Shown: positions 1 through 4,573, counted from the first letter of the stretch. The stretch is DNA of 64,000 bases from Anaeramoeba ignava BMAN (GCA_028826165.1 JAPDFW010000011.1:310001-374000); one strand, 5' to 3'. Made by a program: numbers and translations. The notes: generated from the letters alone by a model not told the origin.

Positions 1-3000
1 CGTTGAAAAATGGATTTTAGAAGAAAAAGATCGTCTTGTTGTTATTCATTCTAAAACTGGGAATGTATTTATTTTGATCCACCCAAAAAAAATAATCTTT
101 AATAATATTTAATAAAAACAATCACCAAAAAATAAAATTAAAATTAAAATTAAAATCAAAAATTAAAAATAAAATTAAAATTAAATTTAAAAATTAAAAT
201 TAAAAATAAAATTAAAATTAAAATTAAAATTAAAATTAAAATTTAAATTAAAATTAATATTAAAATTAAAAATTAAAATTAAAATTAAAATTAAAATTAA
301 AATTAAAATTAAAATTAAAATTAAAATTAAAATTAAAATTAAAATTAAAATTAAAATTAAAATCAAAATTAAAATTAAAATTAAAATCAAAATTAAAATT
401 AAAATTAAAATTAAATAGAGAAGAACAAGTGTAATGGTTTGCTGTTATTTACTTTATAATAAAACTGTTTCAACAGCAGAAGATGCAATATCATTTTTTG
501 AAACTTTAAGATCAACAGATAATAAAGTTTGGGATTAAATTAAGAAATAATGCAAAAGAAAAAAAACTCTATTAAACATTTTATAATAAATAGGAAAAAC
601 CAAATCCAAGTCAAATTCGTTATATTCATTATTTTGAAGATTTAGTTAAAAATGGAGTTAAACCAAAAAAAATTTGTTATTTTCAAAGAATTGTTGTTGG
701 ACCTTTAAAGAAAGTTGATATAAATTCACATGATAAATGTAAATCCAAAATAAATATTTAAAATAAAATATTTAAAATCCAAAATAAAATATTTAAAATC
801 CAAAATAAAATATTTAAAATCCAAAATAAATATTTAAAATCCAAAATAAATATTTAAAATCCAAAATAAATATTTAAAATCCAAAATAAAATATTTAAAA
901 TAATATATTATTTAAAATAAATATTTAAAAATAAATACTTAAAATCAAAAATATTTAAAATCAAAAAGGTCCAAATGTTTCTGTTCATACATTAAATGGA
1001 AAACTTTTATATTCAAGTCATGTAATATTTTAATAAAAATATTTCTTATTCAAAATAAAATTTTTTTTGAATATTTATTAATTAATCATGAATTTAAAAA
1101 AAAAATAGGAAAAAAATAAAGAAGGTTATGTTTCTGTTGATTCAAAAAAAAAAGTTTTAATAATCCTTCCTGATCCTGTTCCGTTAATTGGAGATTATAA
1201 GATCACTTTTTATAATTATAACGTACTTGACATTTTTTATTCAAATTTAATTTTTCCAATTAATTATTTTTTATCCGATTTTTGGTTCATATTTTTTTAT
1301 ATTTAGTCAACAATTTTTGTTTGTTGTTTTAATACTTCTTATATTAAGCAAAATTATATTAAATTTAGACAAGATGAACTTGATTCATTTGATAAGAAAC
1401 ATCAAAAAAAAGAAGGTGTTTCAGTTGAATTATTTTTTTCTTATTCTGAGAATGCTCAGAATAAATCAGGTTAAACATCTAAAAAATTCAAATTCAATAT
1501 TAAATTCAAATCCAAATTAAATATTAAATTAAATATAAAATTCAATATTAAAATTCAATATTAAAATTAAATATAAAATTAAATATAAAATTAAATATAA
1601 AATTAAATATAAAATTAAATATTAAATTAAATATAAAATTAAATATAAAATTAAATATAAAAATTAAATATAAAATTCAATATTAAATTAAATATAAAAT
1701 TCAATATAAAATTTAATATAAAATTCAATATAAAATTCAATATAAAATTCAATATTAAAATTCAATATTAAAATTAAATATAAAATTCAATATAAAATTC
1801 AATATAAAATTCAATATAAAATTCAATATTACACCTTTTCAACTTTGGTTTAAACCTTTTGCAAAAATATTTAAACCTTTTGCAAAAATATTTAAACCTT
1901 TTGCAAAAATATTTAAACCTTTTGCAAAAATATTTAAACCTTTTGCAAAAATATTTAAACCTTTTACAAAAATATTTAAACCTTTTGCAAAAATTTTAAA
2001 CCTTTTTTTTTAATTTAAACCCTTGTCGATTTCAGTATTTGGTTTCAACTTTTTTGACTCTCAATAAATAACAGGTTGAATTTTTTTTTGAAGATATCTA
2101 ATTTTTATTTTTTCTTCCAAATAATGATACAATCTCAAAGAGATGAAAGTGAACCAAATTTTGGATTAATTCAATCCAAGATTCAAATTGGTGCATTTAA
2201 TTCTATTGACTTTATTGACTTTTTACCATATTGTTTTCATGTATTACTTAAAGATGAAGGCTTTAAATTTATCTCTTATAATGTTATATTTTCATCACTC
2301 TAATATGACCACAGAAATATTGGAACATCTTCTCCCTTCTATACATTTTCTTTCATCTTATTCTCCTTTTCTTAATCGTGGTGAAAATGTTTATTTAACA
2401 GTGAAAAATTGTGTTGCTTTTCAACAATTCACAAATCAATAATCTCTGCTTGATTTGATCAAAGAAAGTTAACAAGAACTCTGGAGAAATCCCCAAATTG
2501 ATTATCATATATCAGTAGAAATATTATTCCCAAAACTTTGAACAAAGAATATATTCTTGATTTTTGAAAATCAAAATGAATTGAGATTTTGTATTCTCAT
2601 TTTCAATTCACAATCTTTTTCATCATCTTCCAAATTTTTTTCAAAAAAGAAAAATAAAAGTTTAGATGAAACTTTCAAAAGTCAAGGGTTTAAATAAAAA
2701 AAAGGTTTAAAATTTTTGCAAAAGGTTTAAATATTTTTGCAAAAGGTTTAAATATTTTTGCAAAAGGTTTAAATATTTTTGTAAAAGGTTTAAATATTTT
2801 TGCAAAAGGTTTAAATATTTTTGCAAAAGGTTTAAACCAAAGTTGAAAAGGTGTAAATTAAATATTAAATATAATATAAAATTAAATATAAAATTTAATA
2901 TAAAAATTAAATATAAAAATTAAATATAAAAATTAAATATAAAATTAAATATAAAATTCAATATAAAATTAAATATAAAATTCAATATAAAATTAAATAT

Positions 3001-4573
3001 AAAATTAAATATAAAATTAAATATTAAATTAAATATAAAATTTAATATAAAATTAAATATTAAATTAAATATAAAATTAAATATAAAATTAAATATTAAA
3101 TTAAATATAAAATTTAATATAAAATTAAATATAAAATTCAATATTAATTAAATATAAAATTCAATATAAAATTTAATATTATTAGAAATTTTAGCAACAA
3201 TCCACGATCTTGAAAAAACAAATCAATTTAGTTCTACTCCTGATTCAAATGAAAATAATAAAAAACAAAAAAGAAGAGTTAGATTTTCTTTTGATGGACA
3301 AAATAAAACAAATGATTTCAAAGTTGATGAAATTAACGCTAATGAGAATGATAATGATAATATTAACTTTCAAAAAATAAGTGAATCTAATGAAGATGAA
3401 ACACAATCAGGATATAAAGAAGATCGGCATGTTCGTTTTAATATTCCACAAGAAAATCAAAATGAAAACCAAAATAATAAAGAAAATCAAAATCAAAATC
3501 AAAATCAAAATCAAAATGAAAATCAAAATGAAAATCAAAATAAAGAAAATCAAAATCAAAATAAAAATCAAAATCAAGATGAAAATTCAGATGAAATTGA
3601 AATTGATTTAAATCAAAAAATTACTGATGATTTTTATTATCATGAAAATTCTAATTTAATTGAAGAAAAAAATTTAGAGGATTTAATTAAACAAAATTCT
3701 GATTCAGGATCTGATCAAGAATCAATGGAAGCAAAAATTCGTTTTGTTGAACAATTTTTATTATCAGGAAAATCATTAGAAAGTAATTCTGAAGATGAAT
3801 CAAAAAGCAATTCAAATGAAAAATTAAATCAAGATTCAAATGAAAATTTAATTGAGAATCTAATTTCAAATCGAGATTCAGATGAAAATTTAAATGAAAA
3901 TCAAAATCAAGATCAAGATGAAAATTTAAATCAAAATGAAAATGAAAATTTAAATGAAAATCAAAATTCAGATGGAAATGAAAATCAAAATTCAAATGAA
4001 GATGAAATTGAAAGATCAATTCAAGAATCATTTGAAAAATTAATTTTAGAATCAATTCAAGAATCAATTCAAAATTCAAATGAAGATTCAAATGAAGAGT
4101 TACAAGAATTAAAAGATATAAATGATTTAAATGAACTACTTGAAAAACAAAATCCAAAAGAAGATGAAATTAAAAATGAAATTAAAATTGAAAATGAAAA
4201 TCAAAATGAAAATCAAAATGAAAATGAAAATGAAAATGAAAATGAAAATGAAAATGAAAATCAAAATGAAAATCAAAATGAAAATGAAATTAAAAATGAA
4301 AATCAAATTAAAAATGAAAATGAAAATGAAAATCAAAATCAAAATCAAAATGAAAATGAAAATCAAAATGAAATTGAAAATCAAAATCAAATTAAAAATG
4401 AAAATCAAATTCAAATTGAAATTGAAAATCAAAATGAAAAACAAGATTTGGAATTTTTAATAAAACAAAGTCCAAAACCAAAAAAATCAAAAGCTAATAA
4501 AACTTCAAATTCACCAAAAAAAGTTAGATTTGAAAAAAAAGTTCGATTTCAATTTTCAAGTGATGATGATTAA
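1..4573 (+). CDS. PTEN/tensin-type phosphatase + C2 domain protein with long acidic ENQ-rich tail (5' partial; probable pseudophosphatase)
   Basis: Spliced exons ~<1-64, 419-526, 594-738, 969-1021, 1109-~1221, 1307-1469, 3186-4573 with GT-AG introns. They give VVIHSKTGN|RRTSVMVCCYLL, PSQIRYIHYF, PVPLIGDYKITF and FVCCFNTSYI...DELD, colinear with PTEN PTP and C2 motifs. The last exon is in frame with ORF 3725..4573. Confidence 0.85.
1832..2853. mobile_element. Non-autonomous IS630/Tc1-mariner-type DNA transposon with long TIRs, inserted at TA in a PTEN intron
   Basis: Ends CACCTTTTCAACTTTGGTTTAAACC... and ...GGTTTAAACCAAAGTTGAAAAGGTG are exact inverted repeats. TA flanks both sides (1830-1831, 2854-2855). 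TIRs ~1832-2025 and ~2683-2853 are built from a 21-bp unit (7 copies left, 6 right). Confidence 0.92.
2124..2540 (+). pseudogene. Degenerate DDE (IS630/Tc1, DDE_3-like) transposase C-terminal remnant
   Basis: Two overlapping frames give GLIQSKIQIGAFNSIDFIDFL...ISYNV / FHHSNMTTEILEHLLPSIHFLSSYSPFLNRGENVYLTVK, matching the DN..FHHS...FLPPYSPFLNPIE..K pattern. There is a frameshift, in-frame stops and loss of the second catalytic Asp. Confidence 0.75.

Follow-up and report, generated by a model that had tools for sequence, protein, structure and literature searches.

A probable non-autonomous Tc1/IS630-type transposon family with Foldback-like modular ends in Anaeramoeba ignava

Transposons of the Tc1/mariner group move by means of a DDE transposase, which binds the ends of the element through a helix-turn-helix domain and both excises and integrates it. 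Duplication of a TA dinucleotide at the target is the hallmark of the Tc1/IS630 superfamily, and in the IR-DR elements the outer and inner sites stand well apart. In Tc1 elements of the IR-DR type, the transposase binds two to three direct repeats within ends of about 250 bp (PMC4120734). Foldback-like ends have been described for Tetris (PMC4079207), for Galileo of the P superfamily (PMC3573991) and Tm1 of the Mutator superfamily (PMC3169594). The Anaeramoeba genome paper reports an extreme A+T content for Anaeramoeba ignava and gives no description of nuclear transposons (PMC11550330), and our literature search found no paper on nuclear transposons of Anaeramoeba.

The sequence analysed here, referred to as the window, is a 64,000-nucleotide stretch (C2:310001-374000) of the A. 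ignava assembly, which comprises 42.8 Mb in 147 contigs. The GC content of the window is 17%. An element body of 1,022 bp was delimited at positions 1832–2853, with TA at 1830–1831 and 2854–2855, and both strands of the element start CACCTTTTCAACTTTGG. The ends are composed of the following features.

1830–1831, no strand: TA target-site duplication, left copy; all five complete copies read T-TA/CACC...GGTG/TA-A
1832–2025, + strand: left terminal inverted repeat of about 194 nt, with a 20-nt terminus CACCTTTTCAACTTTGGTTT, seven modules and, innermost, a degenerate unit that ends in AAACCCTTG
1852–1998, + strand: seven tandem 21-bp modules AAACCTTTTGCAAAAATATTT of the left arm, each with palindromes TTTTGCAAAA and AAATATTT
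2681–2853, − strand: right terminal inverted repeat of about 173 nt, from comparison of the ends
2708–2833, − strand: six tandem 21-bp modules of the right arm, inverted, from Tandem Repeats Finder and sequence reading
2854–2855, no strand: TA target-site duplication, right copy, from sequence reading

The identity of the two ends was unbroken over 73 nt, TA included; past this point the arms were one G/A change and one whole 21-nt module apart, and were then identical through AAACCCTTG. Depending on the register, the inverted repeat could be aligned over 158 nt at 96% or over 141 nt at 99% identity. Tandem Repeats Finder assigned a period of 21 to the arms, with 7.6 and 6.6 copies and 97% matches. 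The left modules comprised five perfect units, one G>A variant (1957–1977) and one truncated inner variant, and the right modules four perfect units, one G>A variant (2771–2791) and one inner variant; the TTTTACAAAA variant occurred once per arm, at differing positions, and each arm also contained a truncated inner unit. The two palindromes of the module are 10 bp (TTTTGCAAAA) and 8 bp (AAATATTT) long. The junction between the terminus and the first module was read as GGTTTAAACC, and the terminal 20-mer has a module-like core, ACCTTTT-CAA, a weak likeness that 4.6% of shuffles reach. The predicted RNA fold of the whole element had an energy of -345 kcal/mol, with the stem almost fully paired; if transcribed within an intron, the element would fold into a hairpin whose stem measures about 170 bp. 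A previous sequence-only reading of the window had claimed a TA duplication and arms of about 170–195 bp, with seven modules on the left, six on the right and one G-to-A change in each at a different position, all of which agrees with the structure described here (arms of 194 and 173 nt). It had also proposed identical termini of about 40 bp, which was correct as to identity and an underestimate as to length.

The element interrupts a host minisatellite, which itself lies in a putative intron.

1470–3185, + strand: inferred intron of a PTEN-like gene holding the element, with GT at 1470 and AG at 3184–3185 (an alternative acceptor would place the end at 3194)
1490–1829, no strand: host minisatellite with 12-bp units (AAATTCAATATA), portion of the array to the left of the element, from Tandem Repeats Finder
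2856–3179, no strand: host minisatellite with 12-bp units (AAATTAAATATA), portion of the array to the right of the element, from Tandem Repeats Finder

When the element and one TA were deleted in silico, the sequence read ...AAATTCAATAT-TA-AATTAAATAT..., which could plausibly continue the 12-bp array, as the sequence-only reading had held. The reconstructed junction is ...CAATAT-TA-AATTAAAT..., and a 13-bp variant unit ending in ATTA was found elsewhere in the interrupted array. A TTAA or 3-bp (PIF-like) duplication was ruled out, the flanks TTA/.../TAA representing a TA duplication inside TTAA.

That the element lies within an intron, the last one of the PTEN-like gene, is plausible from the arrangement of the flanking exons; the sequence-only reading had likewise called it intronic. 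The exon at 1307–1471 passed the curated cut-off of Pfam PTEN_C2 (E 1.6e-6), aligning with the final part of the PTEN C2 domain, and joining GT 1470 to the AG at either 3184–3185 or 3193–3194 preserves the frame from this exon into the downstream ORF. This ORF (3170–4570) spans 467 codons without a stop, and 185 codons precede its first ATG, at 3725. Of the trinucleotides in the window, 8.6% are stops; with this value as the per-codon stop chance, we estimate a probability of about 6e-8 for 185 open codons. Since so long an open run without a start is very unlikely by chance, the ORF at 3170–4570 would be an internal exon. With the element removed, the inferred intron is 3.6% GC and consists mostly of the interrupted 12-bp array. 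A protein search with the tail exon for an annotated model, covering 8,000 low-complexity candidates, gave no match at E <= 1e-20. The host gene (window 2–1471 plus 3170–4570) is PTEN-like, with a long N/E/Q-rich tail and microsatellite-filled introns, and in the phosphatase P-loop of its upstream exons Ser replaces the catalytic Cys (VVIHSKTG, by eye).

A genome-wide search with the exact 19-nt TA-plus-terminus sequence gave 12 occurrences. With three mismatches allowed, 13 matches were obtained versus 22 for a reversed-pattern control, and hence no excess. Modules were likewise absent from the assembly outside family members, apart from the relic listed below. Because termini and modules are confined to the element family and 12 termini are exact, a chance origin of these matches is excluded. 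The family members are as follows.

C2 (the window), C146:101777-102760, C10:20042-21006, C117:65074-66015 and C101:13565-14750: five complete copies, from the terminus search
C126 and C71: two half copies, with TA present at the surviving end of both
C66: module relic of 2.5 units, from the module search

All five complete copies were TA-flanked, each within a different AT-rich satellite, and the identity between copies ended exactly at TA/CACC...GGTG/TA. As five different flanks each carry a TA duplication, the copies represent independent insertions, not a segmental duplication. The interiors of all five are 684 bp long and 99.0–99.7% identical, and the window copy equals the family consensus across these 684 bp, with no private substitution. 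At least five very recent insertions have taken place, one of them into the 12-bp minisatellite, in line with the recent insertion previously proposed for the window copy. The order of terminus, modules and truncated inner variant was kept in every copy, with the arms inverted. The number of modules per arm ranged from 3 to 7 and differed between near-identical copies as well as between the arms of one copy; no complete copy had fewer than three per arm. It is this construction from 3 to 7 tandem 21-base modules that makes the ends of the element unusual.

Several copies and their surroundings showed individual features. An apparent 28-bp duplication around the C146 copy reflects the period of the host array and was rejected as a long target-site duplication. 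In the C101 copy, the right arm is interrupted by 288 bp of foreign sequence (C101:14445-14732; L005:2362-2649), between GGTTTAA and ACCAAAG; the palindromic motif GGAAATAATTTCC(TTTCC) occurs three times in this insert, which has one relative, 75% identical, at C1:780900-781229. The half copy at C126:~710985-712081 (L006 ~1440-2435) is older. Its right ~390 bp are about 98% identical to the window copy, and its left 60% is a patchwork of blocks that are either fully conserved or converted into TTTTTATTAAA-like simple sequence, containing indels and numerous transversions, which does not resemble a plain RIP-like pattern; the left terminus is gone. Among host satellites, one with the 21-bp unit AATTGATTTAAATATTTTTTA forms about 79 copies at C1:139052-140629 (L020:1359-2918), and similar arrays are present on C74, C22, C24, C82, C93, C77, C75 and C58. 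These host 21-bp satellites have the core TTTAAATATTTTT and the period in common with the transposon module, at 72–77% identity, a resemblance that may stem from chance in AT-rich DNA or from a relationship between transposon and satellite.

A target preference for satellites was rejected. Tandem arrays hold 61% of the TA sites of the window, a proportion at which five of five insertions in arrays has P ~0.08, so that no preference is needed. Positions 746–785 of the window also sit within a tandem array, of 20-bp period.

Between the arms, the element contains what appears to be the residue of a transposase gene.

2125–2560, + strand: decayed transposase remnant, from reading frames and family matches
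2188–2442, + strand: 84-codon ORF, putatively the second-Asp to Glu part of a DDE_3/IS630 catalytic domain, from Pfam, NCBIfam and ESM Atlas

A DES motif in frame 0 at ~2137–2145, within QRDESEPNFGL, is a possible first Asp. A frameshift lies near 2270, beyond which frame 1 reads LSLIMLYFHHS...FLSSYSPFLNRGENVYLTVK. The position of the second Asp is taken by Leu (LIMLYFHHS), the Glu is kept (SYSPFLNRGE), and the interval between the putative first and second Asp is shortened. The C-terminal tail, SLLDLIKES*QELWRNPQIDY..., is broken by three in-frame stops, and in every copy the ORF has lost its N-terminal, DNA-binding half. The 84-codon ORF matched Pfam DDE_3 with E 0.028 and 14.7 bits (cut-off 28.6; profile positions 88–134 of 146) and the NCBIfam IS630 transposase NF033545 with E 3e-4 and 20.3 bits (cut-off 100; positions 234–282 of 299). 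In ESM Atlas, DDE_3 accounted for 24 of the 30 best named clusters, with a top score of 0.94 and 187 features in common. None of the transposase-family matches passed a curated cut-off; all three methods point to one family and to one position within the domain. These weak, concordant matches suggest that the remnant is a decayed C-terminal piece of a DDE_3/IS630-type transposase. As in IS630/DDE_3 transposases, the residues around its catalytic Glu form a YSP-LN--E motif. No other transposase signal was found within the element, and a phmmer search of 1.84 billion protein representatives matched the ORF of the element alone. The ORF is 96% identical to GenBank KAJ5069960.1, an 87-aa hypothetical protein of A. 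ignava (M0811_11325) that corresponds to the ORF of one copy of the family and is probably a mis-annotated decayed transposase fragment.

Judging from its reading frames, the element cannot encode a working enzyme. The description of the element as internally deleted and non-autonomous is borne out by the missing N-terminus, the frameshift and the stops, and its assignment to the IS630/Tc1 type is upheld by the TA duplication in 5/5 complete copies, the CA...TG termini and the internal, putatively DDE_3/IS630-type remnant. Because the ORF is defective, mobilisation in trans, as the sequence-only reading suggested, is plausible. That reading had suggested a genome-wide check for copies, TA duplications and an autonomous partner; the terminus search yielded the first two, and an autonomous partner was not found.

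The assembly contained no further termini or modules that could mark an autonomous relative, and a protein search of it with the remnant returned the copies of the element itself and no related protein. A match on C83 was spurious, coming from an unrelated 360-aa ORF. Metagenome contigs scanned with the terminus and a module dimer gave no match. The genome does contain four intact DDE_3/IS630-type ORFs of 400–700 codons with complete D, D and E motifs, which are 38–45% identical to one another.

C26:54591-55010, C51:11603-12013, C40:52572-52979 and C36:17920-18333: intact DDE_3 ORFs (loci L038-L041, L051-L058)

By manual count, the second Asp and the Glu are 36 residues apart in the four intact ORFs (DD36E-type), versus 32 in the decayed remnant. 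A tblastn search with the four ORFs against the element gave nothing, and hhalign of the remnant against them gave E 0.06 over 22 columns. By neither method is the remnant detectably related to the A. ignava DD36E ORFs, and these ORFs were rejected as autonomous members of the family. No flanking inverted repeats or module-like words were found within 10 kb on each side of them, the downstream search being shorter for the C40 ORF, whose contig ends about 4.6 kb past it; one chance terminus-like word occurred within the C36 ORF. A broken duplicate of the C40 gene, with the same neighbour, is located at C146:12569. The four ORFs are candidates for domesticated or immobilised transposases. It would be tempting to picture a Tc1/IS630 lineage in which the IR-DR arrangement has turned into a Foldback-like array of helically phased palindromic binding modules, cross-mobilised by such an immobilised or domesticated DD36E gene; we consider this scenario unlikely.

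As a whole, we assign a probability of about 0.72 to the reading that the element is a non-autonomous, internally deleted IS630/Tc1/mariner DNA transposon, which inserts by cut-and-paste into TA and whose modules serve as iterated binding sites. On this account the element would target TA dinucleotides, in the present case within T-TA-A, and would be moved by a transposase acting in trans, one that no copy encodes and that is not recognisable in the assembly. Each end would be an exaggerated form of the IR-DR arrangement, with a terminal 20-mer containing the module-like core, followed by 3–7 head-to-tail 21-bp repeats. The palindrome-bearing (TTTTGCAAAA) repeats are putative iterated sites for the DNA-binding domain of the transposase, and since 21 bp correspond to about two helical turns, such sites would share one helix face. 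In this genome, which is highly prone to tandem repetition, module number may drift by slippage during replication or by unequal exchange. We hold the proposed binding role of the modules, which the sequence-only reading had also considered, with moderate confidence; in its favour are the order and orientation kept in both arms of all copies, the period of two helical turns and the weakly module-like core of the terminus.

The main alternative, possible if doubtful, retains the same non-autonomous Tc1/IS630 derivative and regards the 21-bp arrays as neutral minisatellite expansions without a role in transposition, tolerated because the outer ~20–40 bp alone would be needed. The abundance of tandem arrays in the window (40% of its length) fits this alternative, as does the presence at many loci, e.g. 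C1:139052-140629, of a host 21-bp satellite with a similar core (TTTAAATATTTTT). The palindromes of the module favour slippage, and a module number that shifts from 3 to 7 among >99% identical copies and between arms suits neutral minisatellite behaviour equally well. However, module, inverted orientation and order are alike in both arms of every copy, and every complete copy has at least three modules per arm. A period of 21 bp and a terminus whose core resembles the module are also in keeping with phased binding sites, and repeated sites are used in known Tc1 IR-DR ends (PMC4120734).

It is very improbable that the element is of the Foldback or another non-Tc1 type (MULE- or P-related, like Tm1 or Galileo) and has captured a Tc1/IS630 transposase fragment. 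Long tandem-repeat ends are a Foldback hallmark and occur in the P and Mutator superfamilies (PMC3573991, PMC3169594), and the transposase match is weak; yet the target-site duplication is TA in 5/5 copies, not 7–9 bp, and the remnant lies between the ends, positioned and oriented as in a deletion derivative, in an element without any other transposase signal. Spread of the copies through segmental duplication or gene conversion deserves next to no credence, for although the low copy number speaks for it, as does the location of every copy in AT-rich satellites, which are prone to ectopic exchange, each of the five flanks is a different satellite unit, the 2-bp duplication is precise in every case, identity stops at the TA-flanked termini, and no pair of copies has flanking sequence beyond TA in common.

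On the transposon reading, Anaeramoeba, a deep-branching anaerobic lineage, has a DNA transposon family with sharp boundaries that was active recently. Its natural series of three to seven modules in otherwise identical copies could be used to test the effect of multiplied binding sites on Tc1-type transposition, and the annotation of GenBank KAJ5069960.1 would be corrected from ‘hypothetical protein’ to decayed transposase fragment. Modular ends and annotation aside, the element is an ordinary non-autonomous one.

Compared with the ITm superfamily, the family displays TA duplication, inverted ends and mobility, the last seen in its five different satellite contexts; the transposase remnant fits weakly, and no autonomous member with matching ends was found in the assembly. 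With the IR-DR group (Sleeping Beauty, Minos, Paris, S, Bari1/Bari3) it has in common the TA duplication, long ends (~170–250 bp) and repeated motifs. The length of its ends (173–194 nt) fits that group, but where IR-DR elements have two to three spaced repeats, this element has 3–7 units of 21 bp that adjoin one another head to tail, immediately inside the terminus. The IR-DR group is further characterised by a DD34E transposase with a paired-like DNA-binding domain, and it is the N-terminal half of the ORF that all copies of this element have lost. Its many repeats, arranged in tandem and differing in number, set the element apart from the classical IR-DR type. With the Foldback-like elements (Drosophila FB, Galileo, Tetris, Tm1) it has in common tandem-repeat ends, a shifting repeat number and fold-back of the whole element. 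Those elements, however, make 7–9-bp duplications and belong to other transposase superfamilies, whereas the ends of this element are much shorter (<200 nt) and have a single module type; its TA duplication and DDE_3-like remnant exclude it from Foldback, P and MULE elements. The TA duplication, a transposase acting in trans and an origin by internal deletion are features in common with the non-autonomous derivatives and MITEs of Tc1/mariner (Stowaway-like, mariner-derived). At 1,022 bp and 5–8 copies, however, the element is neither miniature nor amplified and keeps ~435 bp of recognisable transposase sequence, and its size and copy number separate it from MITEs. The previous proposal of an undescribed family holds in the weak sense that no paper on Anaeramoeba nuclear transposons was found, but Foldback-like ends and IR-DR repeats are already known. 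Because Foldback-like ends are documented elsewhere, the design is unusual rather than unprecedented: this small, non-autonomous family is new within the Tc1/IS630 elements, and its Foldback-like modular ends extend the IR-DR scheme, but it does not amount to a new kind of element.
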